From sequence record NC_031107.2: DNA of 64,000 nt. One strand, given 5' to 3'. A program made the translations under genes and the position numbers. The notes beneath the pieces are model-generated. The model was not told where the DNA came from, did no database searches, and was given only the letters and a program-made list of their open reading frames with translations. Of the stretch, positions 10,447 to 31,922 are shown piece by piece (positions within the stretch are counted from its first letter, which is position 1; each line of letters begins with the position of its first letter).

Positions 10447-11433
10447 ATGGCCTTAAAACTTAAATGGAAGAACCCGAACAAGGGTACTACGACCATTGAC
10501 ATTTATCGTGGCACTACACCCAATGTAGACTTGACCACGCCTTTAGTTACGCTTTCCAACGGTGAGTTGGAATACATCGACACCACAGCCCTTTTTGACC
10601 AGACTTACTACTACGTTTGGGCAGTGAATACTGCTAACGACCGAGTAGTATCTCGCCCGCAGAAAATCGAAGTTACTGACCGTCGTGGTCCAGGCAGTAA
10701 CGTTCTGTTACAAGGTAACGAAGACTATGGCTTCTACGGTACGGTAACGTCTGCAGACTTTGTCAGCTCTGCCCCGATTGTAGCAGCCGCAAAAACACAA
10801 ACCGGGCTGCCCACTGGGGTACTTTACCCGCTCTGGTATAAATTTACCCGCAAAGGTAAAATCCTGTTTGTCCCGAATGTGACTTTTGGCAAATTCAACT
10901 GGAACACTCTGTACAATGCCGGGTTGATTTTTGGCACAAACGACACTGGGCCGAAAGATGCTGGTACAGTAAATCAGCTGGTTACCGTGGATGTGAACGG
11001 GGACTTGTTCCTGGTGCGTTGCCCGACCGGATACCCAGAAGGAATGACCTGGGACGGAGGTAACCTTACTGAGCTGGACAGTTTAGCTGGGGCGGAAACT
11101 CATTATTGCGAGTACGATGACTTGATGTTACCAATTCTCCCGTTCACGCCTGCGCGTCAACGCATGGTGACTATTGGGAATGAACCGTATAGCAACTTTT
11201 TCCTGTCACTGTACGNATCCACTGCCGAACTCACGACCGGAGTCTGCTGCAAGGAGTTCGTCGACCCTACCTACGTTCTGGTACGTGGGGGTGGATGGGA
11301 CAACCGCTATGCGACGCCTGACCGCAATTATGCACGCAAAGCCCAACGAATCGCCCGAACCACGGGTAACATGTGGTGGCCGGTGTTAGAGTATGTTGGC
11401 CGTACTGATGAAGTTGATCTGTCCAAATTGTAA
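10447..11433 (+). CDS. Virion protein, cassette gene B3 (328 aa; one ambiguous base at 11216)
   Basis: Paralogue of B1/B2. Confidence 0.7.
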   Translation: MALKLKWKNPNKGTTTIDIYRGTTPNVDLTTPLVTLSNGELEYIDTTALFDQTYYYVWAVNTANDRVVSRPQKIEVTDRRGPGSNVLLQGNEDYGFYGTVTSADFVSSAPIVAAAKTQTGLPTGVLYPLWYKFTRKGKILFVPNVTFGKFNWNTLYNAGLIFGTNDTGPKDAGTVNQLVTVDVNGDLFLVRCPTGYPEGMTWDGGNLTELDSLAGAETHYCEYDDLMLPILPFTPARQRMVTIGNEPYSNFFLSLYXSTAELTTGVCCKEFVDPTYVLVRGGGWDNRYATPDRNYARKAQRIARTTGNMWWPVLEYVGRTDEVDLSKL

Positions 11434-11443
11434 GGAGTAGATA

Positions 11444-12340
11444 ATGGGTATTACTATCAACTGGGATGACCAGACAGATCAGCAGCTGGATGCCATCGAA
11501 GTCTACCGTAGCGACGCGGTTATTAATCCAAATAATCCCGGCACCCCATTAGCAACACTGCCAGGCACTGCCCGCAGCTATGAAGACACCACGGTAAAAG
11601 TCGGTAACACCTACTTCTACACAGTGGCCGTGGTAAAAGGCGGTAACCGTTCGTTTGGGGCCAGTCAGTCACAAGGTTATTTCTCTAACCTGGGCCCTGG
11701 TCCACAACGGGTAATTCGTGGTGATTGGGTGCGGGGCTATTTTGGGGAGATTATGAACGTCGATTGGGTCAGTCCGGTCGACGTTGTCACTAAAATCAAG
11801 GCAGCGCTGAAATCCACCGCAGGTCTGACATTCGTCACGAGTTCTGACCGTTGGCACAAATTCATTTACAAAGGGAAGATCTTCTTCGCTCCCTCGACAC
11901 GAATGATTTATTCCACCTACCAGAACGCCTATAATGCCGGGTTCTTGTTTGGCGAAGACGGCGTAGGACATTTACCTACGGGTGATGCCGGTACGGTGAA
12001 CCAGAAAACCGTAATTGAAATTAACGGTTATCAGTTCCTGGTCCGCCCTATTCGCATGACCGATAAACCAACGACGCAGTACCTGACTTCTGCCGATGAC
12101 TTCCTCAATGGCGAATGGAAAAGTACCTTTGCGCGGTTACGTCTGGACGCAAACGCCATGGTTGACCCTACGGTCTTGCCCCGTTTTAGCGATTACTCAA
12201 GCATTGATTATTGTGGTGGGCCACATCTCGCTGACGCGAATAATTGTGCTACCGCAAACTCTGGTAATCCGGAACTGCTGGCAACCACGGTAAAAACCAG
12301 TAACATCAACTGGTGTATCGTCCTGGAATTATTGCCTTAA
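11444..12340 (+). CDS. Virion protein, cassette gene C3 (298 aa)
   Basis: Paralogue of C1/C2; ends LELLP. Confidence 0.7.
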   Translation: MGITINWDDQTDQQLDAIEVYRSDAVINPNNPGTPLATLPGTARSYEDTTVKVGNTYFYTVAVVKGGNRSFGASQSQGYFSNLGPGPQRVIRGDWVRGYFGEIMNVDWVSPVDVVTKIKAALKSTAGLTFVTSSDRWHKFIYKGKIFFAPSTRMIYSTYQNAYNAGFLFGEDGVGHLPTGDAGTVNQKTVIEINGYQFLVRPIRMTDKPTTQYLTSADDFLNGEWKSTFARLRLDANAMVDPTVLPRFSDYSSIDYCGGPHLADANNCATANSGNPELLATTVKTSNINWCIVLELLP

Positions 12341-12344
12341 GCCG

Positions 12345-12382
12345 TACCCTCTCGCCTTCGGGTGGGAGGGTATTCTTTTTTT
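12345..12382 (+). terminator. Intrinsic terminator closing the cassette block
   Basis: TACCCTCTCGCC-TTCG-GGTGGGAGGGTA then TTCTTTTTTT. Confidence 0.8.
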
Positions 12383-12427
12383 ACAGACATGGTATGAACC
12401 ATTGTTGTTAGTTATAAGGAGGCCATT

Positions 12428-13027
12428 GTGGCTGCTGTTGCTCGTTTTAGTAAAGAAGGTATTATCCGTGCGAAGACTGCGATTGAAGCAGGCTACGTGA
12501 ACAACCCTAACGACCTGGGTGGCGAAACCAATCACGGGATTACCATCGCGACTGCACGCGAGTTCGGGTACAAAGGCAACATGCGTGACCTGACTGTCGA
12601 GCAAGCGCTGGACATCTATGACCGTGGATGGTGGCAGCGTATGCGTCTTGACCAGATTCTGGCCATGAACGTGATGCTGGCAGACCGTCTGTTCGACTTT
12701 GGTATCAATGCCGGTCGTGCTAACGCCATCAAATCGCTGCAGCGTATCCTGAACGTATTGAACCGTCAAGGGAAACTCTACTCAGACATTGATGCCGATG
12801 GCGGGATTGGGCAGCTGACCCTGACCGCGCTGGCAGGCTTTATCAAAGCGCGTGGTGCCGACGGCCTGAACCGTCTGATGTTCGCCCTGACTTGTCACCA
12901 GGTTTCCTACTACACGGAAATCAGTGAGAAGCGCGTGCAGAACGAAGAGTTCACGTACGGCTGGTATGACCGCGTGTACCGCGAAATGCCGGACTATGTG
13001 GCAGAGCTCGGGATGTGCTCAAAATGA
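12428..13027 (+). CDS. Endolysin, glycoside hydrolase family 108 with C-terminal peptidoglycan-binding domain (199 aa)
   Basis: EAGYVNNPNDLGGETNHGIT catalytic motif, FDFGINAG, DG.IG..TL; GTG start after AAGGAGG. Confidence 0.9.
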   Translation: MAAVARFSKEGIIRAKTAIEAGYVNNPNDLGGETNHGITIATAREFGYKGNMRDLTVEQALDIYDRGWWQRMRLDQILAMNVMLADRLFDFGINAGRANAIKSLQRILNVLNRQGKLYSDIDADGGIGQLTLTALAGFIKARGADGLNRLMFALTCHQVSYYTEISEKRVQNEEFTYGWYDRVYREMPDYVAELGMCSK

Positions 13028-13128
13028 AAACCAACTGGTTCGTCACGCTGATGCGTGCAGTTGGACGTGCTCTGTTATTTGCGTTGCGGAGAAAACGTCA
13101 TGAAAAACCCGAAGGTGGAAAAGCCTGA
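13024..13128 (+). CDS. Cationic amphipathic micro-peptide 1 (34 aa, MKTNWFVTLMRAVGRALLFALRRKRHEKPEGGKA)
   Basis: Hand-translated; ATGA overlap with the endolysin stop. Confidence 0.45.
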   Translation: MKTNWFVTLMRAVGRALLFALRRKRHEKPEGGKA

Positions 13129-13183
13129 CTCAGGCTTCCTGAAATTGTTGCGCGCTATTCTCTTTCGCAGGGTGGTGCAGTAG
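13115..13183 (+). CDS. Cationic amphipathic micro-peptide 2 (22 aa, MEKPDSGFLKLLRAILFRRVVQ)
   Basis: Hand-translated; GTG start overlapping peptide 1; stop 7 nt before next ATG; weak RBS. Confidence 0.3.
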   Translation: MEKPDSGFLKLLRAILFRRVVQ

Positions 13184-13190
13184 GCAGTGT

Positions 13191-13832
13191 ATGGAAAAGT
13201 TAAATTATAAAGTGTTGGATAAACCGTGGTTCGTTCTCACGGATGATTTCCATTTCGCGTTTACACTGCGATCGCTTTATCGTGACGTGAGCGGACTGGA
13301 TGAAATGGTACGGTTGTCTGGGGTACATCCGGACAAAGAACTGTACGTGACTGCACCGAAAGGATTTGTGACTGACATGGCCAGCATCCCGGAAGCGCTC
13401 CAACCTATCCTGCATCCGGATGGGCCGTGGGCCGCTGCGGCTTGCGTCCATGATTTGTTCTATCAGAAATGCAGCAGCCCTGGAGTGTATCCACTGGGTG
13501 ATGCTGGGGACATTTCCCGTGTGGTCAACAAAGACTTCGCGGATTTAATGTTCCTGCGGATTATGGAAGCGTTGAATGTTGAACGTTTTATCCGGTTGTC
13601 ATTCTACGAGGCGGTACGCCAATTTGGCTGGCCATCTTACACGGATGATAACAGCCGTGTGGTGTATAAGCACGGTGTGGAAAAAACGCTTAGCTACAAC
13701 CGCAACTACCTGTTTATTCGTGACCAGGTAGAAGTCGCCATTCCTGACCATGAACGTGTGGATATCACCAACGGCCAATCGGTTAATGTTAAGTATTTAA
13801 ACATTAAACGGGCCTTCCTGACCCTCGAATAG
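13191..13832 (+). CDS. DUF1353-family protein (213 aa)
   Basis: GFVTDMASIP...AACVHDLFY...AD.MF...M motif. Confidence 0.8.
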   Translation: MEKLNYKVLDKPWFVLTDDFHFAFTLRSLYRDVSGLDEMVRLSGVHPDKELYVTAPKGFVTDMASIPEALQPILHPDGPWAAAACVHDLFYQKCSSPGVYPLGDAGDISRVVNKDFADLMFLRIMEALNVERFIRLSFYEAVRQFGWPSYTDDNSRVVYKHGVEKTLSYNRNYLFIRDQVEVAIPDHERVDITNGQSVNVKYLNIKRAFLTLE

Positions 13833-14602: not shown

Positions 14603-15139
14603 ATGGCTACATCTGCTAAGGCTCAATTGATTGCACTGTTTAACACTGCTAACGCCTCCCTGCCTCAGGCACTGGCCGAAGCAGACGTTACGTTTGGTGC
14701 TGTTGCAGCTTATACTCCGGCTGACGGCGGCGACACGCGTAACTCTAAACTCACCCTGACCGCGGTTGCCGAAAGCACCCACTTCACCGGTGAGAAAGAA
14801 CTGCACTATACTCGTCTGGCTGCAAGCATCGTTGGCGCGAAAGCGGTCACCGATGACCAGGCTGACTGGGATACGGATGCAGAAGTGTTGGCGTTCCTGA
14901 ACGCTGACGTTACGGCTGCCGGAAATACGGTTGACCAGTTCGCACTGTCCGAGCTGACCATCACCCGTACCGATGGCGCGGATGCCGACGCTGGTAAGAA
15001 AATTATCAAAGTCGACATCAAAGATGGTCACATCAAGTTCCTCGCCGGAACCCTGGCGACCTACACCATTACGCAAGAAATCACTAAAACTGACCTCAGC
15101 ACTACTGACGGTGAGCTCAACGGTTTCTCCGCTTCTTAA
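14603..15139 (+). CDS. Small virion protein with shared N module and C-terminal DGELNGF tag (178 aa)
   Basis: DTRNSKL..FTG.KELHY.RL; ends TDLSTTDGELNGFSAS. Confidence 0.7.
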   Translation: MATSAKAQLIALFNTANASLPQALAEADVTFGAVAAYTPADGGDTRNSKLTLTAVAESTHFTGEKELHYTRLAASIVGAKAVTDDQADWDTDAEVLAFLNADVTAAGNTVDQFALSELTITRTDGADADAGKKIIKVDIKDGHIKFLAGTLATYTITQEITKTDLSTTDGELNGFSAS

Positions 15140-15207: not shown

Positions 15208-15714
15208 ATGGCTAAGACGTTAGAAGAACTGTTTGTCGATATGATCAACGAAGTAAACCCAGACCTTGGGTTGACACTCGCGGACGTCACTTTCGGTGCG
15301 CCTTCCGAATACACCCCCACGGATTCTGGGGACACCCGCAACACGTCTTTGACCCTGACGGCCAAGGCGGACAGTGAACGGTTTACAGGTAGCAAAGCAT
15401 ACCATTATTTTCGGTTTAACTTCACCCATCCGAATGGGGCAGACACCCCAACGTTGACGACATCAGACTTACCAAGCTTGTGGGAGGACGATGCACAGGC
15501 GTTATCGGTGATCAACTTGATGTTACCGAACTACAAACTCAGTAGCAGCGAAATCACTGTGACGCGCGTGGTCGTGGACGATAAGAATACCGATATCCGC
15601 ATCACGATTAACCCTAACCATCTGAAATGGCACGGGGTGTTTGTTACCCGTGTCGTTAATGAAGGGAAGATTAACTTGCAGTGGCGTAACGCCGAGTTAG
15701 GTGGATTCAGTTAA
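15208..15714 (+). CDS. Small virion protein, paralogue of 14603 (168 aa)
   Basis: DVTFGA..YTP.D.GDTRN shared with 14603; ends NAELGGFS. Confidence 0.7.
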   Translation: MAKTLEELFVDMINEVNPDLGLTLADVTFGAPSEYTPTDSGDTRNTSLTLTAKADSERFTGSKAYHYFRFNFTHPNGADTPTLTTSDLPSLWEDDAQALSVINLMLPNYKLSSSEITVTRVVVDDKNTDIRITINPNHLKWHGVFVTRVVNEGKINLQWRNAELGGFS

Positions 15715-15763
15715 AAAGAAAAAGACCTACTACCGTTATCGGGTAGTAGGTCAGTTTTATTTT
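15715..15763. terminator. Bidirectional terminator ending the radical SAM operon (-) and the 15208 gene (+)
   Basis: GACCTACTACC...GGTAGTAGGTC flanked by A-run and T-run. Confidence 0.75.
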
Positions 15764-15768
15764 ACCGC

Positions 15769-16425
15769 TTACAGCAAGCCGTTCTCAGTCGCTACCGATT
15801 TAATGCCGGTAAAGTCCTGTGCCTCGGCCAACGTGCGGATTTTGCGCTTAAGTTCAGTCATCGACGCAAACAGCTGGGCGTCACGCTCAACAATCGCCGC
15901 CAGTACCGCTTTACACGCTGCCAAATCGAAGTTATCGAGATGGTTGTTCTGTGCATCCACCCAATACTCCGGGGCAATGTCTGCCTGGATGTATTTGGCT
16001 AAAGCCGAGCGTGATTTCTCATCGGCCTGCAACACCACACCCTGGAACATCAGGTTGGAGTGACGTTCCTCTTCGTACTTCTCAGCCAGTCGCGTATAGA
16101 TAGGCTGAATCTCTTGATAGAGATAGTTTACCGTCGAGGTCAAGCCTTTGCGGATTTCATCCAACGGCAACTCCAGCACCTTCTCAATAAACTCTTTGGC
16201 CTTACGCAACGTGAACTGGGCTTCCGGTTCACTGAGGTCGTACTCACGCAGCTTTTTCAAGGCTGCTTTATCGGACACCCCGTTTAACAGATGATAGTGA
16301 AGCAGAGTACAATACCCCTGCTTGGTCTCATCGTCTTTCGCCAGAATGTTAACATAGTTACCATGCCGGTCAATGGGGGTACCGAATTCGAAGTAACGGG
16401 CTTTTATCTCGTCATTACTAAGCAT
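15769..16425 (-). CDS. Putative tail-fibre-associated protein with DUF4376-like C-terminus (218 aa)
   Basis: C-terminal LQADEKSRSAL...WVDAQNN...L...L.AI..R....F pattern resembles DUF4376 proteins found beside phage fibre genes. Confidence 0.55.
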   Translation of the reverse strand: MLSNDEIKARYFEFGTPIDRHGNYVNILAKDDETKQGYCTLLHYHLLNGVSDKAALKKLREYDLSEPEAQFTLRKAKEFIEKVLELPLDEIRKGLTSTVNYLYQEIQPIYTRLAEKYEEERHSNLMFQGVVLQADEKSRSALAKYIQADIAPEYWVDAQNNHLDNFDLAACKAVLAAIVERDAQLFASMTELKRKIRTLAEAQDFTGIKSVATENGLL

Positions 16426-16994
16426 TCAGATTCTCCTGCTAACCCGAGGTCCATCAGCAGACCGAAGTCAACCAGTTGGAAGTGCTCAGACAGCTCCTCC
16501 CCCCAGATGAACTTCATCTTCTCTGCCAAGTCCCCGTTCTGTTCCTGGAAGACAAAGGTCTGGTGCATTTCTTCACCAAACGAATCGAACTGATGATTGG
16601 AGCGTAGGGCACGCACACGAATCCCAACGAGGTCAGCGGCGTCTGGATTCTCCGGGTCAGCCCAGTTTAACGCCAGACCAATCAGGTTATCCACATCCAG
16701 GTTCTGCGTAGAACGACGCAGGATTTCGATTTTGTGGCGCGGGAATTCCGCAACACGCTGTTCGAAGCCCGGATTACGCTTCTCCACTTGCTCAATGGAA
16801 TTGTGGGTTTTCTCAACCCCGTCCAGCGGCAGAATGACGTTCAGCCCGAAGCGTACGCACAGACGACGCACTTCATCAGTGAACGCGTCCGGCTCCACAA
16901 TAGCGTGGATGTTGTACATGCCGTGCTTTTGCATAAACGCGGCAACAAGGTGAAGATTACGCTTCGTAAAATTGTGAATCAGCAACGACTTCAT
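16404..16994 (-). CDS. Hypothetical accessory protein of the radical SAM cluster (196 aa)
   Basis: ATG after TAGGAG; overlaps both neighbours. Confidence 0.65.
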   Translation of the reverse strand: MKSLLIHNFTKRNLHLVAAFMQKHGMYNIHAIVEPDAFTDEVRRLCVRFGLNVILPLDGVEKTHNSIEQVEKRNPGFEQRVAEFPRHKIEILRRSTQNLDVDNLIGLALNWADPENPDAADLVGIRVRALRSNHQFDSFGEEMHQTFVFQEQNGDLAEKMKFIWGEELSEHFQLVDFGLLMDLGLAGESECLVMTR

Positions 16995-18297
16995 TCGCTG
17001 GTGCTCCTAATTGGGTTTTCTCGGCTGCCTCTTTACGGGCACGTACACAGGACACGCAGTAGCATTGTGACCTGTCGTTCAGATCGGTATAACGGGTGGT
17101 ACCGGTTTTCTGGTAGAAGTATTCCGCAACCAGCAGTTTCGCGGTTGTCCAACCACACTGGCGACGTTCAGCGTGATAGGCTTTGCGGTCTTCCATCTCC
17201 CCGTCACCGTTCTCGTATGATGCCGCGGCACAACTACCACACGCGTGCTTCATCGGACAACCCAGGCAGGTTTCTGGGTAGTTGGTGTACTGTGTTTGGA
17301 TTTCGTTCAACAACTTATTGTTGTCGATGTTCACGATTTCACGCCCGCGCAGTTCAGCGATGGCCTGACGGGTGGTGACCGTGGACATAAAGCGGTTGCA
17401 GCCGTAAATCTTGCGGTCGAAGCCCAGACAGGTCATGTGGGTTACGGTACCGCAGAACGGACGGACGCGCTCCGGGTTCAGACGCGTTGCTTCGTCGTCC
17501 AGGAGCTTTTGACGCCAGTCCGGGTCCCAGGTGGCCATAAAGTCCAGGCCGTCCGGGAAGATGTGAGTCAGACGGTTACGTGGGTCTTTCTCGAAACCTT
17601 TCTCAAACCAGTAGTCAATCACGTCCATCATCTGGAGTGCAATTGACATCGCCATGGTACGTGGCAGAATGTCTTCGTACGTCACGTTACCCGAGATGGT
17701 ACCACCGCCGGTGACATCCATCAGGTGCTTCATGGACTCAGCGTACTTCGGCAGGGTTTCAGAGGTAAAGGTTGCCTTGATACCCAGCTCCAGGATACCG
17801 ACCGATTTCAGGTAGTTATACCCGCGCATGGCTTTTTCGTACGACCCTTCACGCGTGGTGGTGAAGATACGGTAACGGTCGTGAACTTCTGGCAGGCCAT
17901 CGATAGACACACCGATGGACAGCTTGTCACGCCACCGCTCGATAATCTCACGGTTCAGTGGCTTATCGAACAATGTCCCGTTGGTCGAGATAGAGAAGAT
18001 GACATCGCGGTTATCACGCTTCGCCAGTTCTTCAGCCGTTTCAAACACCGCTTTCAGAATCTTCGGCTGCATCATCGGCTCACCACCGATAATGTCAATG
18101 ATAACCTCGACGTTGGTCAAGTGACGATCGCGGTCGAAACACGCATGAATGAAGTCTACTGCGTCATCGACTTTATTGTTACGCGGATATTTACGCTCGT
18201 AGCAATATTCACAGTCGAGGTTACAGGAGAGGTTGGTCACCACCTGGTAGGTTTTGGTGATTTTAGGCTCTTGAGCCGGTGCTTTAGTATCACGCAT
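16957..18297 (-). CDS. Radical SAM/SPASM peptide maturase (446 aa)
   Basis: CNLDCEYC (CxxxCxxC), IIGGEP, SISTNG, VSIDG..EVHD..R; SPASM Cys set C..C..GC / CxxCx5CxxC / C; extra C-terminal CYCVSC. Confidence 0.92.
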   Translation of the reverse strand: MRDTKAPAQEPKITKTYQVVTNLSCNLDCEYCYERKYPRNNKVDDAVDFIHACFDRDRHLTNVEVIIDIIGGEPMMQPKILKAVFETAEELAKRDNRDVIFSISTNGTLFDKPLNREIIERWRDKLSIGVSIDGLPEVHDRYRIFTTTREGSYEKAMRGYNYLKSVGILELGIKATFTSETLPKYAESMKHLMDVTGGGTISGNVTYEDILPRTMAMSIALQMMDVIDYWFEKGFEKDPRNRLTHIFPDGLDFMATWDPDWRQKLLDDEATRLNPERVRPFCGTVTHMTCLGFDRKIYGCNRFMSTVTTRQAIAELRGREIVNIDNNKLLNEIQTQYTNYPETCLGCPMKHACGSCAAASYENGDGEMEDRKAYHAERRQCGWTTAKLLVAEYFYQKTGTTRYTDLNDRSQCYCVSCVRARKEAAEKTQLGAPANEVVADSQFYEA

Positions 18298-19195
18298 TGC
18301 GATTTAACCCCGCTTGCACTACACGATTGATATACTGGTAAGCGTCGTATCCGATAACTTCGGCCAGACGATTACACCCTGAGCTAAGCACATCGAGCGC
18401 ATTGTCAGACTGGTCAAACGTGGCGTCGGATTTTACCCACACCAGATTGCTACAGTCATCACAATGTTGGCTGAAGAACTTATTGATGCTCAGCGTCTGA
18501 TGGAACCCGTTAAGGTTGTTCAGCTCAGTCAACTGGTCGTGCATTTTGTTGTACCCGTACATGAAGTTCATGACGAGATCCTGGTTCAGCGGCTTAGGCA
18601 TGAAGTTATCAAACATCACGCGGTAGCCGTTGAACTTGTAATGGTACAACGCTTCGTGGAGTTTCAGCAGGTCGAGGAACCAGTGTTTCGGTGCCAGTTG
18701 GGCACGCGTAATCACCGACCACAACGTGATGTTGTCCAGTGCGTCAAACACTTCGAAAGCATCGTAGCGACGCTCCTCAGCGATACGCAGTAACGGACGC
18801 TCGGATTCCGCATAGCCGTCAAACGAGACGAAAATGCGATCCATTTGCTTAAGCACCGGCAACTGGGCCGGGGTCAGTCGCAGACCGTTGGTGTACATTT
18901 CATGCTGTAAGTGCGGGTAGCGCTCTTTCAGTTCAGCCATGAAATCCTGGATTTTGTTGATGGCCAGTAACGGCTCACCCCCAGTCCAGTTAATCTGCTG
19001 AATAGTCGGATGGGCTTCCAGCGTTTCAAACAGCTTCTCTCTTTGGACGTCGCGCGCACTGTCTTTGACGTCCATATACCCAACACCGCCACAGAAGCTA
19101 CAATCTAAATTGCACTTCGAGGTGGTGACTATCGACAGCTCCATTGGAGCTGACGAAGGGTCGCGACGAATAGCCGACACAGCTTCTTCACTCAT
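18290..19195 (-). CDS. Second, shorter radical SAM protein (301 aa)
   Basis: CNLDCSFC, WTGGEPLL, YTNG, VSFDG; short C-terminal CDDC...GCNRL; 8-nt overlap with the next gene. Confidence 0.9.
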   Translation of the reverse strand: MSEEAVSAIRRDPSSAPMELSIVTTSKCNLDCSFCGGVGYMDVKDSARDVQREKLFETLEAHPTIQQINWTGGEPLLAINKIQDFMAELKERYPHLQHEMYTNGLRLTPAQLPVLKQMDRIFVSFDGYAESERPLLRIAEERRYDAFEVFDALDNITLWSVITRAQLAPKHWFLDLLKLHEALYHYKFNGYRVMFDNFMPKPLNQDLVMNFMYGYNKMHDQLTELNNLNGFHQTLSINKFFSQHCDDCSNLVWVKSDATFDQSDNALDVLSSGCNRLAEVIGYDAYQYINRVVQAGLNRNA

Positions 19196-19211
19196 TGCAG
19201 GTTTACTCCAG

Positions 19212-20099
19212 TTATTCGAACGTCAGCTTGAACAGCGGGTCATCTTTGATGTCCACACCCGTCTTTAACACAAACGGCGAGTTGTAGGCATCGAGGATCT
19301 GGTTCAGAATTGCCTGACGAGCATTCACGCGCTGTAAGTCATCTAATGTGACTGTGCGAGCACGGAAGGCAGACACGACAGTTTTTTCTTCGTCTGTCAG
19401 GTCTACTTTAGTCAGCAGGAACGCTACCAGTTTGTTCAGGTCTGCTTCGGTAGAAGGTGATTCGCCGAACTTGGCTTGCACCAGGTACTGCATCCACGGC
19501 TTGCGGATACGCTTGGTGATTTCATGTTCGTCGAAAATGGCTTCGAATTGTTTTGCTTCCGGGTTCCAGATGAACTTGTAGCTGTAGGCCAGCAAGTCCA
19601 ACATGTTGGTAATCCCGTGCTTTTCAAAGCCAACAATTGGGTAATACTCTTCAACACCGGTGTATTGCTCGGTGTCTTTTGTCACCTGCGTATACCAGCC
19701 CGGCATAGAACCCATATAGTCCCAGCTCCATTCACGACGCGCCATCGGTTTCAGGTCGCTTTCAGCAAACGGAATCAGGAACATTTCCAGGTCAACCACC
19801 TGGTTCAGTACAGCGTCGCTCAGGAAATACTTCCCGTCGACCAGACGACCCCACACGTCCTGCTCACCGGCAGTGATGTGGATGTGTTGCACCGTATGGC
19901 CCGCCAGTTCGTAAGTTGCTTCTACCGTGTAACTTTTCGGATTAGCAATCTCACGACCACGCACCTTCGGCCACTCCCCCGGTAACTGGCTAATCAGGCG
20001 CACTTCGTCGAGCAGGTGGTATTTCACGCTGTCGTAGATGCTGATTTGCAGTGGGAAGTTTTGCGTTGTTTTAAACGCAAGGTGTAGATCGTTCTTCAT
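19212..20099 (-). CDS. Hypothetical protein between the precursors and radical SAM genes (295 aa)
   Basis: Clean ORF with AAGGGG RBS, tightly packed in the operon; no motif recognised. Confidence 0.7.
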   Translation of the reverse strand: MKNDLHLAFKTTQNFPLQISIYDSVKYHLLDEVRLISQLPGEWPKVRGREIANPKSYTVEATYELAGHTVQHIHITAGEQDVWGRLVDGKYFLSDAVLNQVVDLEMFLIPFAESDLKPMARREWSWDYMGSMPGWYTQVTKDTEQYTGVEEYYPIVGFEKHGITNMLDLLAYSYKFIWNPEAKQFEAIFDEHEITKRIRKPWMQYLVQAKFGESPSTEADLNKLVAFLLTKVDLTDEEKTVVSAFRARTVTLDDLQRVNARQAILNQILDAYNSPFVLKTGVDIKDDPLFKLTFE

Positions 20100-20112
20100 T
20101 TAAATAGTCCCC

Positions 20113-20319
20113 TTATCGGTTCCCCGCTCCGTGACTACAGCCACCGCTACACGTCCAGCTGCATGACCCACCACAGTTGTAGTGCGACAGTGGCAGTCCT
20201 GCAAGGTTATTGGTGCTACTAACAATCCCCTGCGTTGCGATAAAGTTATTCGCATCGGAGGTTTTGATGTAGCCCTCAACTTGCACCATTCGGTCACGAA
20301 TGTTTTTTAGTGAAATCAC
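20113..20319 (-). CDS. Cxxx-repeat precursor peptide P3 (68 aa, 4 Cys)
   Basis: GTG start after GGGGG; leader ISLKNIRDR as in P1; core NCGGSCSWTCSGGC. Confidence 0.85.
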   Translation of the reverse strand: MISLKNIRDRMVQVEGYIKTSDANNFIATQGIVSSTNNLAGLPLSHYNCGGSCSWTCSGGCSHGAGNR

Positions 20320-20362
20320 ACTAACCCCCCAATTCGTAAAAAGTTAAATGGGGCATCGGGTC

Positions 20363-20761
20363 TTAACGCATTGGTCCGGAACAACCAGAACAACCGGAGC
20401 AGCTGGAAGAACAGGAAGACGAACAGCCTGTTGAGCAGGTACCGGAGCAACCATTTGCACAGCCACCTGAACATGCACCAGAACACCCTGTACATGTTGA
20501 AGAACAGCCAGACGTACAGCTGGCAGAACAGCTTGCCCCACACGTTCCCGATGCGGAACCCGAACACCCGCCTGAACAGGATGAACACGTCCAACTACAC
20601 GTACCGCCGCAGTCATAGTGCGCCCGCGGTTGACCGCCAAATAAGTTGGAGTTGTTTGTGGCTTTGTTACGGATGTAACTTTGCACGCCCGCTGCGGTCT
20701 TTAACGCGTTGGCGTCGATAACATTCAGACGATTCTGAATATCTTTAAGGTTGATAGCCAT
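20363..20761 (-). CDS. Cxxx-repeat precursor peptide P2 (132 aa, 20 Cys)
   Basis: ATG 20761 after TAGGAG (track start 20830 moved); MAINLKDIQNRL leader; core DCGGTCSWTCS...CSGCSGCSGP. Confidence 0.88.
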   Translation of the reverse strand: MAINLKDIQNRLNVIDANALKTAAGVQSYIRNKATNNSNLFGGQPRAHYDCGGTCSWTCSSCSGGCSGSASGTCGASCSASCTSGCSSTCTGCSGACSGGCANGCSGTCSTGCSSSCSSSCSGCSGCSGPMR

Positions 20762-20772
20762 GTTGTCTCCTA

Positions 20773-21156
20773 CTACGGCCCAGAGCAGCCAGAACAGCCA
20801 GTGCAGCTCGATGAGCACGATCCAGAGCACCCGCTACATTTACCCGAGCAGCCGCCAGAGCAACTACCTGAACAACCTGAGCAACCCGAACACCCGGTAG
20901 AACACCCGCCCGTACAACTGCCTGTACATGTCGACGTACATGTACCTGAGCAACTGGTACAACTTGCCGAACAACCGTTAGAGCACGACCAGCTACACGT
21001 TCCGCCACAGTCCAACTGTCCCGGTGTCCATCCAGCGAAGCGGTCTTGGGCGTTATTCGCCTGTGCCGCTACCTGACCATCAACACGGGGGCCGGTGGCG
21101 TAATTGCTCTCCACAGTTTGCAGGCGGTCGCGTATGTTTTTAAGTGAGATTGCCAT
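20773..21156 (-). CDS. Cxxx-repeat precursor peptide P1 (127 aa, 21 Cys)
   Basis: ATG after AAGGA; MAISLKNIRDRL leader; core DCGGTCSWSCS...CSGCSGP. Confidence 0.88.
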   Translation of the reverse strand: MAISLKNIRDRLQTVESNYATGPRVDGQVAAQANNAQDRFAGWTPGQLDCGGTCSWSCSNGCSASCTSCSGTCTSTCTGSCTGGCSTGCSGCSGCSGSCSGGCSGKCSGCSGSCSSSCTGCSGCSGP

Positions 21157-21167
21157 ACGTTTCCTTT

Positions 21168-21207
21168 AAGAATAAAAAAGAGGACTCTGCCATATAGACA
21201 GGTCCTC
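21168..21207 (-). terminator. Probable terminator between the 399-aa fibre gene and P1
   Basis: GAGGAC...GTCCTC stem followed on the - strand by TTTTTTATTCTT. Confidence 0.55.
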
Positions 21208-21222: not shown

Positions 21223-22422
21223 TTATCGTGTACCGGCTTCGGCTTGTACGTCGTCGCGAGTGGTGAGACTGTTGTTGACGTGTACCGCGGCCTGTACCAC
21301 ACCGCCATACGTTTTGTGCAGGTAGTTCGGGTGCGGGTTGTCTGCCGCAACGTGGTTTGCCAGGTTTTGGTTCGCCTGAGAAATCGCGTTGGTGTTATTG
21401 GTAACACGGGTATTGAGTGCGGTAATCTGGGATTGCAGGTTGTCGAACTTCTGTTGGAAGTCCTGGCCTTGCGATTCCAAATCCGCCACACGTTGGGTTA
21501 ACCCGTTAACCAGCGACTGCAGATCGTTGACCATCTTTTGCAGTTGCAGTACCAGCGAGTTGAGGTTTGCCAAAGCAAGCGACATCTTCTGGTAGTTCTG
21601 CGCCACCACGTTGAGCTGGTCGTTCCAGGCTACCAGTGATTGCACCACCGCATCGATACGGGCACCCAGAGCCGTATCTGCAGTTTTCAGGCCGTTGATA
21701 TCCTGAATAGTCGCATCAATCGCAGATTGCACGCCTGCAATCAAAGCACGAATCTCGGTTTCGGTCAGGCCGTTAGCCTGGTGAATATCGAGTTTGTGCA
21801 CATTGCCCTGGGCATTAACGTGGGCGTTCAGGGCATCGAGGAAGTCTTGCTTCAACCCGTCGATGATGGCTTTGATTTGTTCCAGCTGTACTGCCGAGCC
21901 GGAGTTAATCGCATCCTTAATCCCTGAGAGCACCGTGATGATGAATTCGAACCCGTAGATGTCACCCACGTCTTTAAACGTCGGAGCAGACGGGAACGTA
22001 TCCGGCACGTTGCGCAGGTCTTTGAAATCTACCGTACGGTCTTCGAGTTTCAGCTCTTTAATAGCTTGCTCGATGGCCACTACGTTGGCAGACTGCGGCC
22101 CACCGATGACTTGGGCAGCGACGGTAATAGAGGTAGGGATTGCCGAGTTGGTAACCACCACCGCCATAACGACTTCACGGCCTTTGGTGAGCTTCTCATA
22201 CGCCGGGTGCAGGAAGACCAACTCGTAGTCTGTCCCGCGTTTGTACAGCGTGCCAGGTTTGTTACTGGCATACATCTTAAATGTATCTGCGTAAAACGGG
22301 CCCGCCGGGAATGCAAAGGCACGGTTGACTTTACCCGAGCCCAACGTAATCGGTCGGGTAACGGCGTTAGAAGTCAGCGTGCCCCTGAGGTCAAGCGGGT
22401 ACTGAAAAACAATATCGGCCAT
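21223..22422 (-). CDS. Short coiled-coil tail-fibre-like virion protein (399 aa)
   Basis: N-terminal YPLDLRG...N domain shared with the long fibre genes; long heptad region; HVAADNPH motif; no obvious C-terminal head. Confidence 0.7.
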   Translation of the reverse strand: MADIVFQYPLDLRGTLTSNAVTRPITLGSGKVNRAFAFPAGPFYADTFKMYASNKPGTLYKRGTDYELVFLHPAYEKLTKGREVVMAVVVTNSAIPTSITVAAQVIGGPQSANVVAIEQAIKELKLEDRTVDFKDLRNVPDTFPSAPTFKDVGDIYGFEFIITVLSGIKDAINSGSAVQLEQIKAIIDGLKQDFLDALNAHVNAQGNVHKLDIHQANGLTETEIRALIAGVQSAIDATIQDINGLKTADTALGARIDAVVQSLVAWNDQLNVVAQNYQKMSLALANLNSLVLQLQKMVNDLQSLVNGLTQRVADLESQGQDFQQKFDNLQSQITALNTRVTNNTNAISQANQNLANHVAADNPHPNYLHKTYGGVVQAAVHVNNSLTTRDDVQAEAGTR

Positions 22423-22466
22423 GGCCAGAACTCCTTTGATTGGGGCGTCCGTGCCCCACAGCGCTG

Positions 22467-25400
22467 TTAAGACTTGAACATAAGATTGACCTGAATCTCA
22501 TCGAGGTCAACCAGTGCACCGCCCGCAGCATATTCACACGCCACCGACAACGTCAGTGTCCCCGCATCATAACTCGCCTGGTATGGCGGGTTAAGCCCAT
22601 CATTACCAGCATGTATCACGACAGCCGGTTCAGATGGCAGATTTGGAATCACCAGTTCGCGTGCCACTCTCACCACCCCGCCTCCGTTCAACTCGCTGGA
22701 TGCGTAGATAAGGAATGGGGTATCGACATCTGTTTGACGGAACACCGTACCGGTTGCGTCCTCTACCACTTGCATGGAAAGGATTTTATTTCCCAGCGAC
22801 TGGTATTGCGCGGCGGTCAGTTGTACGGACATGTGCATCACGTACTCCATCCCGGCTGCTAAACCAGAACCCACGATATTTACAAGGTCATTGCCGGTAT
22901 TAAACGTCATTTCCGACGACTGGCTAGTAGCCGCTGAATTCAAGCAGTATTTGAAACTGCTGATTCCATTTGGCACTGCATATCGCTGACTGATCATCTT
23001 GCTGGCGTCACCCACATTGCCTGGAACGGTAAAGCGCAGCTGCGCCACCGCAGTATAGGTTTCCCCTGATACCACTGGCGACATCTGTGCCCCAATCCAT
23101 TTCATGTTAAAGCTGGCCGCTTTTGCGTTATCCCCGGATACAGCTGCGGTTTCCATGGGGTTCTTTAACCAGAAGCGGCGAGCAACGTTCTGGAAGTGTT
23201 CCCACTTGGTGACAGCAAAACCTGCAAACCGCTTCTGAATCGGTAAAGCGGGCCGCAGCTGATGTTCGATACCTTTATACAGCTCCTGACCATCGGCATA
23301 TCCCGCCACCCCAAGACCAGGGGTCGAGAGCGCAACCCGTTTCAACAGACCCATCGAACCCACACGCGATTCACGCGCCGCCGAAACGTCATGGCGATAC
23401 GCAACCCCTGCGTGTTCTTCAAGCTGTTTCACCTGACCCAGACGTTTTACCTGCTGGATATCCTGCCCCGTAATACGGTTAGCATCGGTTGTCACCCAAC
23501 CCACGTACAGCAAACTGTCAGTGTCGGGGTGACGTACCGTGTCCATCAGATAACTTGCGCTACCGTTAACTACCTGAGCGTGCAGATAGAAAGTCCGATT
23601 GGCGTGTGCCGTTGGGTAAACATCACTGAGGTCAATCGACCAGGTCGGGAGTGTATAGCTGGCACTACCGAACGACAGCTCCACTTCTTCCGTCAGATAG
23701 AGAATCCACCCTTCGGCAGTCTCCACCCCAGCCAAAATAACCGCTTGCGGTGAAGCCGTGGTCGCAAAGGTAGGGTCAGCAACGAAGTTTGCCAGCGTAT
23801 ACGCATCCCCGGAACAGAACACACGGTCTGCTTTCGAATAAATGCGCGCGACACTATTCCAGCTGCCAGCACCCATGTAGACCACAGACTCAGGCGTGTG
23901 TGACGGAGCCATACGACGCAGTGCCGTTTTCCCTGCCACTTTTGTCCACGTCCCGCTACTGTAACGCAACCCTGCCGCATAACCGACCGATGCCAAATCC
24001 CCAATCAGGCGCAGCCCTAACGTGTACGGTAACCAGATAGCAAAATCGGTTCCGTTAGTGGAGGCCATAATCGGCTGACCCACACGTTTGGTTTTCCCAC
24101 CGGTAATCTCTCCCAACATCGCGTAGTTCAGACCGTAGTCCAGGTTGTTGAAGAAATCGAGCAGGTTTACTGCTGCCGTCGGGAACGATACATTGCCACC
24201 GGAAATGGTTGGCGTCATTGTGAAGTAATAGACGTCAAGGGTATTGACGTTGTTCACTACACGTTGTGCCGAGACCTGAATCAGCGTCAATGGATGCGCC
24301 GTACCAATACCCATAAACCAGACAGCAAACAGCGCTTTCCCGGCCTGATTAGCGGCATTGATGTATTCCGATGCGTACCCGTTTGCGGCCCCTGTCGGTG
24401 CCCCGTCCAGAATAGATTGCTTCATCTTATTCCATTCGGTTTGCGTCAGGTTCAACCGGTCAGCTGCCAAGGCAAAGTTACCCGGTACGTTCTTGTACGG
24501 GAAAGACTCAGGTCCCGTACAGTACCAGCCATTCAGCACACCCACGCCTTGAGACGGCGTCAGCATCAACGGGATGTTGCTCAACTGTTCATAGAGGGTG
24601 CTATCTACTACACGCCGCGCGTTGTCCGGGCCGTAGCCGCTGTAGCCTGCCACGTTATACGGTTTGTTCGGGTCAACTTCAACCTCGATTGCTGTCCGTG
24701 TACGTGGGTCAGATAGCCACAACAGATTCGAACCACCCAACCCTAACGGATACGACATCCCAGTGGAGTAAACAGACCCACGCCCCTGGTTTAACGTTGC
24801 CGCACTGTTTTGGGTGGCATCGGCAAACGCGGTATAGTCGTAGCGCAGGAAATCGTACAAGGATTTCCCTTTGGCAGGCCGGATAGCAATCCCTGGCATC
24901 TGGTCAGCATCACCTGCCAGCCACTGCGACACCACTACATCATTTACTACCGTCGCGAACGTGCGGTTGTTTGCCACACCACCGTGCCATTTGCCTTGGG
25001 TAAATCCATCAAACGTACCGTCGGCATATTTCACGGTTGTGACATCAGCAACCAGCGGGAAACGCTGCGGACATTCCAGCGTGACGGTGTTCGCTTCGGT
25101 ATCCAGTACAAAACTGGTTTGCCATTGGCTGAAATTCAATACGTCACCGTTAGGTGCAGCGAACCACATTGTTGGGGCATGGTTAACGCGCACCTTACCT
25201 TCGCTGACCCCGTACATGTGGTTGGCTTCTGGCCCATGTACGAAGTTAGTGGCGTTCGCCCATTTCGCTGCCGCTTCTGGCGTCAAATAGGTGACGAACG
25301 GGCCTGTTTGTGAGGCTGCTGTTTTCTGGCCGTAACGAATCATCAGGTTATCACCCGACATCCCGCTTTCACCGGTCAGTATCACGCGTTCAAACGTTAC

Positions 25401-27650
25401 CGTGGCATTGGCAACGTCCGCGGCTTTCAGTTTCCATGCCGCAACAGAATACTGCGCGTTTGTCAGCACGTTACGCAGCAAGAACACATTGGTGCCTACC
25501 GCGACGATATCATCCGTGGACACATTTGGCACAAACGCCGCCGTGGTAACGTCTGTCCCGTTACCGTTACGGTAGTCCGGGAAGTTAACCTGAGACACCG
25601 CGGTGTGTTTCGCATGATCCATCGACCCGTTGAACAACACCAGATAACGCTTACCATCCGACCCCAGACACACCGCACCGTCAGTACCGGTAATCAGAAT
25701 CGCCACCAGAGACACACCAGGGAACTTGCTCATACCCGCAGGCATATACTTCACCGACGTCTGTTGCACGTTGGTCAGTTTCTGGTCGTTGGTGATGTCA
25801 GCATACGCGTAGTAAATCGCTTCACTACCCGCTATCCCGTTACTGCCGTTACGCAGGGAATAGAGACGCCCTTGCTGATATCCGATTAACCCTTTCTGGT
25901 AGGTCTGGTTTTTGGTGAAGCCGGAATAGTTCCCCATTGCTGGAATCGGTAAGAACCCGCCATTACCAAACTTCGCCCCTGGAACTGTCCAGGCAGGCAG
26001 CAACGTGTTGATTTTGTCGCTGAGCTGGTCAATCTTCTGATCCAGTAAGAAGCCCTGACGTGACGTCACGACTTTATCATCCGTCGTATCAATCGCATCC
26101 CAGATTTTCAGCAGGCCACTGGCGGTGGTTGAGCCATACGGAACATTGTCGAGGTCGGCAATGGTGTGCGTGTGGTCACTTTTCGCTTTCGTGGCGAGGG
26201 CAGCGGTCAATGCTTTAGTAACCGGCTTTTCCAGTGGTGTGGTGTTGTCCATCTTGTCCACACCAAAATCCGCTTTGGTCAGTGTCAGTACCTGATTGCC
26301 GCTGGCGTCTTTCACGAAGCGTTTGCCGTTGATGCTGTAAGTGTCGTCCACATACAGGTCAAGTTTGGCTTTCAGGTCGGTAACCGCTTTCTGCGAGATG
26401 GCTGCACCGGTGGCCACGGAGTTAGAGATGTTCGTGATGGAGAACAGACCCGCCACTGCGTTGGTTGCGGTGGGCAACTCGACGTTCATGTACACCGGGT
26501 TGGTTTGCTTACCGCTACCGTAAATCTTGAGCGTGTCGCTGGATTTAAAGTAGGCATTGGCAGGCAACAGTTTAACCGCGGTCAAATACATCCCGACCAT
26601 GTCCGGCGTTACCAGGAACACCGAGTTAAAGACCGGGGCCAACACATCCATGCTGTAACCGCCCCACTTATCCCCAGCTTTCCCCGAATGCACCCACAGG
26701 GTATTGAGGCCCGCCGAAAACTCCACCCCGATACCGGTGTCGTTGTTGTCCTGGTCGGCTTTTAATACCAGCGGCTTTGGTGAGGTGATAATGAATTTCT
26801 CACCTTTCAGGCTAATGAGGTGGCCCGCGGTGGTCTGGAACGTAATCGCGTCGTTGTTGAGGACACGCAGACGACCCAGCAAATCCCCCAGGGTGTTATC
26901 CATTAACAGATCAACGTGAGCCTGGGAAATCCCCGATGTCGACATCAGGTTAACGAGCTCAGCCAACGTACGACCAAACGCTCTGGTAGCATCAACCGCT
27001 TTACCGACAACCGGCAACGCACCCACGTCGGTCGTGGTATAGCCGTGCGCATTGCTTTTCAGGTGATGCTGATACATCTCCTGCTCAAACACCGTGTTAC
27101 CGTTCTGATAGATCATATCCGTCAGTTCAGTAAACGCCGTATCCAGGTCACCGGCACGGGCCAGAATCCCTACGCGAATATCTTCGATGGCTTTTACCAC
27201 TTCATCGCGCAGAATAGCTTCTTCGATGTTTTCTGGCGGGTCAATCGGGGAAATCACCGGTGCGTATTTCATCAACTCTGACCAGTCCACGTTACGTGGG
27301 TCTTTCAGGTCAGTGCGCACCAGGTATTTACCAATCTCTGACTGCGGCAGACGATACTGACGGCCAACAGACAGGATTTCATAATCGACTTCGGTGGCTG
27401 TCAGTAGGATGAAGCCCCCGTAGATTTGGTCTTGCTCAGCTTCGGCCAGCTCTTTGAAATAGTAACCGAGATAATAATCCAGACCCTCGATAAGGGTACG
27501 TTTACCGCCAGGTGCCGTTGCATCCTTAACAGTAAGTTTCAGCCCAATGCGGTAGAAAGGACCTTCGGCAGGAATCACCGCATTGTATTTATTCGGGTAC
27601 GTTGCGGTCTTGAGCGTACCGTTAAACTGCGCCGCATCTTCTCTCGGCAT
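22467..27650 (-). CDS. Long tail-fibre-like virion protein (1727 aa)
   Basis: ATG 27650 after TAGGAG (track start moved); fibre repeats ATNAVAGL, STTASGLL, LTKADFGVDKMDNT. Confidence 0.75.
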   Translation of the reverse strand: MPREDAAQFNGTLKTATYPNKYNAVIPAEGPFYRIGLKLTVKDATAPGGKRTLIEGLDYYLGYYFKELAEAEQDQIYGGFILLTATEVDYEILSVGRQYRLPQSEIGKYLVRTDLKDPRNVDWSELMKYAPVISPIDPPENIEEAILRDEVVKAIEDIRVGILARAGDLDTAFTELTDMIYQNGNTVFEQEMYQHHLKSNAHGYTTTDVGALPVVGKAVDATRAFGRTLAELVNLMSTSGISQAHVDLLMDNTLGDLLGRLRVLNNDAITFQTTAGHLISLKGEKFIITSPKPLVLKADQDNNDTGIGVEFSAGLNTLWVHSGKAGDKWGGYSMDVLAPVFNSVFLVTPDMVGMYLTAVKLLPANAYFKSSDTLKIYGSGKQTNPVYMNVELPTATNAVAGLFSITNISNSVATGAAISQKAVTDLKAKLDLYVDDTYSINGKRFVKDASGNQVLTLTKADFGVDKMDNTTPLEKPVTKALTAALATKAKSDHTHTIADLDNVPYGSTTASGLLKIWDAIDTTDDKVVTSRQGFLLDQKIDQLSDKINTLLPAWTVPGAKFGNGGFLPIPAMGNYSGFTKNQTYQKGLIGYQQGRLYSLRNGSNGIAGSEAIYYAYADITNDQKLTNVQQTSVKYMPAGMSKFPGVSLVAILITGTDGAVCLGSDGKRYLVLFNGSMDHAKHTAVSQVNFPDYRNGNGTDVTTAAFVPNVSTDDIVAVGTNVFLLRNVLTNAQYSVAAWKLKAADVANATVTFERVILTGESGMSGDNLMIRYGQKTAASQTGPFVTYLTPEAAAKWANATNFVHGPEANHMYGVSEGKVRVNHAPTMWFAAPNGDVLNFSQWQTSFVLDTEANTVTLECPQRFPLVADVTTVKYADGTFDGFTQGKWHGGVANNRTFATVVNDVVVSQWLAGDADQMPGIAIRPAKGKSLYDFLRYDYTAFADATQNSAATLNQGRGSVYSTGMSYPLGLGGSNLLWLSDPRTRTAIEVEVDPNKPYNVAGYSGYGPDNARRVVDSTLYEQLSNIPLMLTPSQGVGVLNGWYCTGPESFPYKNVPGNFALAADRLNLTQTEWNKMKQSILDGAPTGAANGYASEYINAANQAGKALFAVWFMGIGTAHPLTLIQVSAQRVVNNVNTLDVYYFTMTPTISGGNVSFPTAAVNLLDFFNNLDYGLNYAMLGEITGGKTKRVGQPIMASTNGTDFAIWLPYTLGLRLIGDLASVGYAAGLRYSSGTWTKVAGKTALRRMAPSHTPESVVYMGAGSWNSVARIYSKADRVFCSGDAYTLANFVADPTFATTASPQAVILAGVETAEGWILYLTEEVELSFGSASYTLPTWSIDLSDVYPTAHANRTFYLHAQVVNGSASYLMDTVRHPDTDSLLYVGWVTTDANRITGQDIQQVKRLGQVKQLEEHAGVAYRHDVSAARESRVGSMGLLKRVALSTPGLGVAGYADGQELYKGIEHQLRPALPIQKRFAGFAVTKWEHFQNVARRFWLKNPMETAAVSGDNAKAASFNMKWIGAQMSPVVSGETYTAVAQLRFTVPGNVGDASKMISQRYAVPNGISSFKYCLNSAATSQSSEMTFNTGNDLVNIVGSGLAAGMEYVMHMSVQLTAAQYQSLGNKILSMQVVEDATGTVFRQTDVDTPFLIYASSELNGGGVVRVARELVIPNLPSEPAVVIHAGNDGLNPPYQASYDAGTLTLSVACEYAAGGALVDLDEIQVNLMFKS

Positions 27651-27740
27651 TGCAAAGACTCCTACTTTGAAATAAAACGGATACCCCACCCCGAAGGGTG
27701 GGGTTACCTACGGACGGGTGACGTCCGCAGACGTTCCGTC

Positions 27741-31910: not shown

Positions 31911-31922
31911 TCAGAGTTCTCC

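Follow-up and report, generated by a model that had tools for sequence, protein, structure and literature searches.

An eight-gene block in the jumbo phage Erwinia phage vB_EamM_Asesino (NC_031107.2; genus Erskinevirus; 246 kb) sets two radical SAM enzymes beside three small Cys-repeat proteins, and we read it as a maturation module for a virion component associated with the tail fibres, giving this reading a probability of about 0.55. The window, that is, the whole stretch of DNA analysed here, comprises 64,000 nucleotides of that record (record coordinate = window coordinate + 124000), and the block occupies 15769-21156 on its minus strand. An earlier reading made from the letters alone (the sequence-only reading) had listed eight co-directional genes here, and each of these open reading frames (ORFs) is present at its coordinates. 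The genes are given below in order of transcription, with lengths in amino acids (aa).

20773-21156, minus: pepA, 127 aa with 21 Cys; matches phrog_6085 (5.7e-48)
20363-20761, minus: pepB, 132 aa from the MAINLK start, with 20 Cys; a pepA paralogue, gp185 in the record
20113-20319, minus: pepC (gp183), 68 aa; a paralogue with one short CX3C block and 4 Cys
19212-20099, minus: gp182, 295 aa; phrog_8030; accessory protein
18290-19195, minus: rSAM1 (gp181), 301 aa; radical SAM enzyme
16957-18297, minus: rSAM2 (gp180), 446 aa; radical SAM/SPASM-type enzyme
16404-16994, minus: gp179, 196 aa; phrog_7988
15769-16425, minus: gp178, 218 aa with a C-terminal DUF4376; final gene of the block

Neighbouring genes either overlap by 8-38 nt or are separated by gaps of 11-43 nt. 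The system would probably serve to cross-link part of a virion fibre, and not to make a secreted antibiotic-like peptide; the likeliest account of pepA, pepB and pepC is that they are minimal virion proteins associated with the fibres, and that the enzymes staple their C-terminal Cys ladders. A stapled virion part had been a secondary suggestion of the sequence-only reading, and it is the one that the evidence favours.

In the proposed mechanism, rSAM2 with its SPASM part and rSAM1 with one auxiliary cluster would act in the infected cell and bind each Cys sulfur to a carbon of a nearby residue; by analogy with CteB, PapB and CrpC, the links would be thioethers. A flexible Cys/Ser/Gly tail would thus become a chain of small rings resisting reduction and proteases. 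As rSAM2 itself lacks a recognition domain, gp182 would probably hold or present the substrate. The mature proteins would be incorporated into the tail fibre apparatus whose genes lie directly upstream. The rationale that we infer is that the cytoplasm, the site of virion assembly, bars disulfides and that radical SAM enzymes can install non-reducible links there. The complete pathway and the heavily crosslinked peptides of which the sequence-only reading spoke are likewise putative.

Tentatively, the proposal may reach further. Many tailed phages, among them jumbo myoviruses, T7-like podoviruses, phages with GpJ-type tail tips and gut phages, may end a fibre or a small fibre-associated protein in a CxxxC ladder stapled by a phage radical SAM enzyme; the orphan CXXX-repeat system could then be largely this module, and the link could be the first enzyme-installed virion-protein crosslink of the type seen in peptides that are made by the ribosome and modified after translation (RiPPs). 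If true, phages put covalent, non-reducible crosslinks into an exposed fibre part within a reducing cytoplasm where disulfides cannot form, the orphan pair TIGR04114/TIGR04115 gains a biological role, and radical SAM enzymology gains a new substrate class.

Cys-repeat proteins and Cys blocks fused to tail fibres

Selection on the peptide frames. The pepA protein consists of a 49-residue N-terminal segment and a 78-residue Cys/Ser/Gly/Thr block in which the Cys residues are spaced as 14 CX3C and 6 CX2C units. All three proteins fall in phrog_6085, a family of unassigned function (E-values 1e-27 to 1e-52). Each has ~48 conserved residues at its N-terminus, and these are followed by a junction motif with the ending ...CGG(S/T)CSW(S/T)C and by a C-terminal CX3C/CX2C ladder. 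Their Cys blocks are made almost exclusively of Ser, Cys, Gly and Thr, with zero Asp, Glu or Gln. When compared with orthologues in Caitlin (Machinavirus), SPN3US (Seoulvirus) and two metagenomic relatives, the three frames have ratios of nonsynonymous to synonymous differences (pN/pS) of 0.14-0.36 at a pS of 0.63-0.86, where synonymous sites are near saturation, and all Cys positions are retained across these genera. Purifying selection spans the whole length of the frames, the supposed leader being conserved as strongly as the core. Because of these ratios, and because a Shine-Dalgarno-like sequence precedes each of the three ORFs, the peptide frames are not chance ORFs. One could still suppose that they are artefacts of a repetitive, GC-rich stretch and that the radical SAM enzymes modify nucleotides or DNA, as several alternative-frame ORFs do overlap them and some of these are the ones annotated in public records. 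The selection in precisely the Cys-rich frames, the Cys conservation across genera, the ribosome-binding sites, the PHROG family matches and the enzymes' best matches, which are all peptide maturases, make this hardly credible.

Survey of enzyme/target loci. A profile of rSAM2 homologues, run against viral sequences, yielded 80 viral loci (numbered with L below), with 203 of 560 candidate stretches confirmed as relatives; the enzymes of these loci form 39 clusters at 70% identity. A target was defined as an ORF with a chain of at least 8 closely spaced Cys, on the same strand as the enzyme and at most 1.6 kb from it. Such an ORF lies beside the rSAM2 relative in 72 of the 80 loci, upstream of the enzyme in 58, and its Cys block ends no more than 30 aa from the C-terminus in 64. 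The pairing of enzyme and Cys-repeat protein thus recurs across phages, and since the two are so tightly paired, the Cys block is the probable substrate. In Asesino, pepA, pepB and pepC lie 1-3 kb upstream of rSAM2 on the same strand, and CX3C is the main spacing of their Cys. Targets that pass a composition filter have 40-482 aa, and three further loci (L088, L100 and L102) have Cys-repeat proteins of 460-1120 aa that fall outside it. Two of these proteins (L100, 4633-7995, 1120 aa; L102, 620-3415, 931 aa) carry, beside a radical SAM gene, C-terminal repeats of Cys with Gln, Glu or Thr that resemble the C-X-X-Q/D motif of CrpA.

At least part of the Asesino region is shared by 39 phage records, from Erwinia jumbo phages (Stratton, phiEaH2, Caitlin, ChrisDB and the SNUABM series) and from the SPN3US group of Salmonella and Escherichia. 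Close homologues of rSAM2 (49-98% identity) are in many cases on contigs of ~220-250 kb, which matches these jumbo phages in size, often labelled as Salmonella or E. coli assemblies; beyond these, identity falls to ~36% and the hosts are wholly different. For cellular genomes, the best identity to rSAM2 is ~30%, and a Cys-repeat neighbour was found in 13 of 80 loci, these being the best full-length matches only. Scanning viral contigs for the junction motif D/N-C-G-G-S/T-C-S-W-S/T-C returned 12 stretches, nearly all on contigs of 220-246 kb, so the strict motif is too narrow for survey use. Two metagenomic jumbo relatives have a third rSAM1-type gene between their pepA and pepB homologues (L016, 5652-6563; L021, 1137-2048).

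Fibre identity of the targets. In several loci, the Cys block is the end of a clear tail fibre. The N-terminal part of the L028 target matches tail-fibre PHROGs at 1e-55 and 1e-51 over residues 3-314, those of L027 and L030 do so at 2e-40 and 3e-32, and matches of the L029, L043 and L088 targets are weaker. The family built on the jumbo-phage peptides, phrog_6085, is matched by 27 of 44 non-redundant targets, and among the 25 most-matched families listed, all the other annotated ones are tail, tail fibre or tail collar families. PF27846 is listed for three distant Cys-tail proteins. The genes around the targets are illustrated by the following loci.

L005: 40-kb phage with a GpJ-type tail tip protein upstream; the target is a 258-aa protein with phage-tail-type repeats that ends in a Cys block; the gene order is Cys-block protein, gp182 homologue, three radical SAM genes, another fibre-like protein
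L007: T7-like phage; a gene with the T7 tail-fibre N-terminal domain is directly followed by a Cys-tail protein and a radical SAM gene
L008 and L009: gut phage contigs; a Phage_fiber_2 gene lies just upstream
L056 and L085: the radical SAM enzyme scores above the TIGR04115 cutoff; the gene directly before the target encodes a tail fibre

A bulk scan of 107 ORFs adjoining the loci of the 39 clusters gave tail fibre, tail, minor tail, baseplate and tail sheath as the commonest annotated families, along with integrase, DNA invertase and endolysin. The DNA invertase and integrase neighbours (in loci L027-L102) hint at temperate phages and perhaps at invertible fibre segments. The TIGR04115-type locus L037 has, ~2.4 kb downstream of its radical SAM gene, a gene for a reverse transcriptase (11643-12881; phrog_1423, 1e-39) that may belong to a diversity-generating retroelement beside the fibre module.

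The smallest of the three Asesino proteins has a counterpart in a longer, fibre-like chain: pepC aligns with residues 178-224 of the 258-aa L005 protein (E-value 1e-5), the alignment takes in ~30 residues ahead of the first Cys, and the pre-Cys positions of phrog_6085 also align to longer Cys-repeat proteins. The supposed leader therefore has counterparts in longer chains, and by alignment it appears to be part of a fibre-type protein. This bears on the RiPP-like character that the sequence-only reading gave to the system, and on a free peptide as its main product. Under that classical scheme the 48-residue leader would be cut off and the crosslinked core would serve as a bacteriocin, an intracellular effector or an anti-defence factor, and it can draw on the leader-like and core-like layout, on the three paralogous precursors beside radical SAM enzymes, and on CrpA and CrpB, which likewise share a 47-residue N-terminus. 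One locus also suits it: in L010, no recognisable virion genes flank the peptide/radical SAM block, which comes after a small gene of the Acb2/Tad1 type. We consider the scheme quite unlikely. The leader is conserved as the core is and shows homology to the stretch ahead of the Cys in longer fibre-like proteins; tail fibres as long as 482 aa, and proteins as long as 1120 aa, have homologous Cys blocks fused to them; and the tail-module context recurs in phages of several types. Nor does the block supply a protease or transporter; the sequence-only reading had recognised no transporter or leader peptidase, and Pfam, NCBIfam and PHROG searches find none among the eight proteins. A free peptide is thus not supported as the main product, and the enzyme architecture described below also tells against it. 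The small gene ahead of the L010 block (8600-8821) encodes a hairpin domain of an anti-defence family.

Radical SAM enzymes and accessory proteins

Family relationships. The top NCBIfam match of rSAM2 is the PapB family NF047865 (130.4 bits over residues 24-359; cutoff 340). It scores 122 bits over residues 16-375 against TIGR04115, the CXXX-repeat target maturase (cutoff 350), and 52.5 bits against the CrpC-type model TIGR04463 (cutoff 525); for both enzymes, the best NCBIfam matches are peptide maturases throughout. On the substrate side, pepB scores 16.6 bits against TIGR04114 (cutoff 20), a model that pepA and pepC do not match. TIGR04114 and TIGR04115 had been named in the sequence-only reading; both models exist and are the relevant families. 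The scores accordingly bear out a family relationship and not a curated membership, with rSAM2 under every curated family cutoff and pepB under that of TIGR04114. TIGR04115 scores are graded across the survey, from L085 (446) and L056 (386), both above the cutoff, through L034 (308), L033 (296) and L027 (183) to Asesino (122). Judged by these comparisons, rSAM2 is a divergent branch of the TIGR04115 family and a relative of PapB, and the description of the block as a phage-encoded radical SAM/Cys-repeat modification system related to the catalogued CXXX-repeat family stands.

Conserved Cys and fold. The sequence-only reading had credited rSAM2 with a full set of SPASM Cys, and the pattern is there: a CX3CX2C motif (C25/C29/C32) and seven more Cys in SPASM-like arrangement (C282, C300, C344, C347, C353, C356 and C381), all invariant in 13 homologues, although the Pfam SPASM model itself gives no match in rSAM2. 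Jumbo-clade enzymes have an extra C-terminal CxCxxC past the SPASM part (C412, C414 and C417; 16957-17064, minus), which is not found in more distant homologues and lies in a low-confidence tail of the structural model. By sequence, the nearest solved protein is 5wgg/5why (E-value 4e-13, ~20% identity), which we take to be CteB, the SCIFF thioether maturase. The AlphaFold model of rSAM2 (pLDDT 84.8) has the same entries as its top Foldseek match (E-value 2e-15, TM ~0.58), with ChlB, anSME, TigE and SuiB as subsequent fold matches. The sequence match to CteB begins near CteB residue 103, and what comes before that in CteB is a recognition domain at the N-terminus. In rSAM2 the core starts as early as about residue 13, and neither the extent of the NCBIfam matches nor the AlphaFold model leaves an N-terminal RRE or other recognition domain, a further point against a classical RiPP pathway.

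The second enzyme, rSAM1, has a CX3CX2C motif (C28/C32/C35) and three C-terminal Cys conserved among 23 sequences (C245, 0.96; C248, 0.87; C274, 1.00). These would suffice for the one extra cluster of a candidate 'twitch'-type enzyme and do not make up a full SPASM motif. No solved relative of rSAM1 was found by sequence search of the PDB.

These enzyme features bear on a rival in which the Cys ladder is structural or metal-binding. Here the Cys would be free, metal-bound or joined as disulfides after lysis, and the radical SAM enzymes would make some other change (epimerisation, carbon-carbon links, side-chain oxidation) or act elsewhere. It would explain Cys blocks without the Asp, Glu and Gln acceptors of PapB and CrpC, and it sits well with an rSAM1 that has one auxiliary-cluster motif and no close characterised relative, with an rSAM2 that is below every curated family cutoff, and with the suspicion of metal binding by CrpA (PMC13692751). 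We nevertheless judge this unlikely: with enzyme and Cys-repeat protein paired in 72 of 80 loci, the Cys block is the likely substrate, and the closest relatives of rSAM2 in sequence and fold are thioether-forming maturases. Thioether enzymes of the CteB fold, as in the SCIFF/CteB system, also use Thr and other residues as acceptors.

Accessory proteins. The gp182 model (pLDDT 90.2, pTM 0.85) is beta-sheet in one half and helical in the other. It has no fold match in the PDB or among the viral structures of BFVD except itself, and it does not resemble an RRE domain, which again speaks against the RiPP pathway. Homologues of gp182 occur in the jumbo clade and in L005, L006, L007, L010 and L027-L030, and in L005, L010, L027, L028 and L030 the gene sits between the target and the radical SAM genes. 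The family is rare, with 41 representative clusters among 1.84 billion proteins. In TIGR04115-type loci, a gene of ~190 aa without an NCBIfam match takes its place; homology of this family to gp182 was considered and rejected (hhalign probability 0.1%). Among the loci examined, homologues of gp179 were confined to the jumbo clade and L010, a related 76-kb contig, and those of gp178 to the jumbo clade. The latter protein had been called DUF4376-like, correctly: it matches PF14301 at 37.6 bits over residues 113-204 (gathering cutoff 25). No PDB sequence match was found for gp182, gp179 or gp178.

Gene neighbourhood, annotation and points against a virion role

Flanking features. The block lies between virion structural genes and a terminator, as follows.

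22467-35651, minus: gp188 (1740 aa), gp189 (1389 aa) and gp190 (1242 aa), large paralogous virion structural proteins
21223-22422, minus: gp187, 399 aa, directly upstream of the block; virion structural protein with a coiled-coil region
21171-21207, minus: hairpin and T-run between the gp187 stop and the pepA ribosome-binding site
15724-15752, both strands: bidirectional intrinsic terminator with an 11-bp stem and T-runs on either strand

An N-terminal domain is common to gp187, gp188, gp189 and gp190. Their SPN3US orthologues, gp167-gp170, of which gp167 corresponds to gp187, were detected in virions and carry no 'Head' label (PMC5694885 Supplementary Table 1). What had been called four fibre genes upstream are thus indeed four co-directional, paralogous virion structural genes (21223-35651), for which 'fibre' is plausible and not proven. 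The bidirectional terminator noted in the sequence-only reading is real, and it closes both the radical SAM block and a converging set of plus-strand genes. Two of these, gp176 and gp177 (14603-15139 and 15208-15714, plus), are DUF7941 paralogues, and gp176 shares 69% identity with gp160 of SPN3US, a head protein present in abundance (PMC5694885 Supplementary Table 1); the genes converging on the terminator are therefore head genes, not tail genes. Elsewhere on the plus strand, the virion structural gene gp169 of Asesino (10447-11433) has an X in its translation that reflects an ambiguous base in the window. The hairpin at 21171-21207 leaves no space for a promoter before pepA; partial terminator, RNA 3'-end structure, attenuator, transcript end and stabiliser are its candidate roles.

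Annotation blind spot. Public records either omit the peptide genes or call them in the wrong frame. The Asesino record has no annotation for pepA and gives pepB (gp185) a longer start, and its gp184 (20316-20594, minus) and gp186 (20760-20900, plus) are alternative-frame ORFs that overlie pepB and pepA. The blind spot includes the best-studied relative, SPN3US, where the three peptide ORFs are intact (L004, 12192-13221; individually 12829-13221, 12414-12818 and 12192-12398) and the sole coding sequence annotated there, SPN3US_0166, is in an alternative frame. In SEGD1 (L002, 10253-11281), the annotated coding sequences gp169 and gp170 are likewise alternative frames. The SEGD1 pepA homologue, whose counterpart in SPN3US is intact, has its frame broken once, by either a real break or a sequencing error. 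With such records, database-driven proteomics could not have detected the peptides.

Several points weigh against a stapled fibre component. The rSAM2 scores are under the TIGR04115 and PapB cutoffs, and that of pepB is under the TIGR04114 cutoff. The Asesino Cys blocks have none of the Asp, Glu and Gln that PapB and CrpC use as acceptors. Against tail-fibre PHROGs, pepA, pepB and pepC give no match, phrog_6085 being the only PHROG that they hit. The hairpin between gp187 and pepA may separate the radical SAM block transcriptionally from the fibre genes. A 'split fibre', with gp187 as shaft and the peptides as tip, was tried as a candidate and rejected, the comparison of gp187 with the shaft of the single-chain L005 fibre not being significant. 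The substrate-holding role of gp182, which has no fold match, is a guess. Finally, SPN3US virion proteomics did not report gp161-gp166 (PMC5694885 Supplementary Table 1); this absence has no bearing on the peptides, as they have unannotated ORFs and only a wrong-frame coding sequence stands in for them. The SPN3US papers do not discuss gp161-gp166.

Relation to known systems

The closest catalogued system is the pair TIGR04115/TIGR04114, in which, as here, a SPASM-type radical SAM enzyme stands beside a protein with a long run of Cys-X-X-X units; rSAM2 spans the whole of the enzyme model. The Asesino system differs in that its jumbo-phage branch also has another, shorter radical SAM enzyme along with gp182, gp179 and a DUF4376 protein, and in that the Asesino scores are below the cutoffs. 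The TIGR04115 catalogue entry states no function, whereas the viral loci above its cutoff sit in phage tail-fibre modules.

CteB is the closest protein to rSAM2 in both sequence and fold and has a SPASM domain with two auxiliary clusters; the ~20% identity and the lack of such an N-terminal recognition domain set rSAM2 apart. PapB, the freyrasin enzyme (NF047865), is similar in that its substrate has repeated Cys-X3 units, in which it forms thioethers. It is described as joining Cys to Asp or Glu (PMC9413430), two residues that the Asesino Cys blocks lack; its product is a small peptide, and rSAM2 is far under the cutoff of the family.

A precedent for a protein substrate comes from Methanococcus voltae, whose SPASM radical SAM enzyme CrpC (TIGR04463 family) installs ranthionine crosslinks on the Cys-rich protein CrpA and not on a short peptide (PMC13692751). 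As in the jumbo phages, its paralogous substrates have in common an N-terminal segment of ~47 residues and end in C-terminal Cys repeats (PMC13692751). CrpC differs in having an RRE, and the CrpA motif is C-X-X-Q/D in 17-residue repeats; its context is cellular and possibly metal-related, as opposed to viral (PMC13692751).

Neither a phage tail fibre link of a radical SAM/Cys-repeat system nor its jumbo-phage form, in which three short targets go with two enzymes and gp182, was found in the searchable literature, which also yielded no link of radical SAM Cys crosslinking to a virus particle; a comparative paper on jumbo phages (PMC7824862) does not mention the system. Measured against these precedents, radical SAM crosslinking of Cys-rich peptides is known, the enzyme class and its pairing with Cys-repeat proteins are already catalogued and crosslinking at the level of a whole protein has one recent precedent, whereas for the tail-fibre connection and for the jumbo-phage arrangement the searchable literature gave none.

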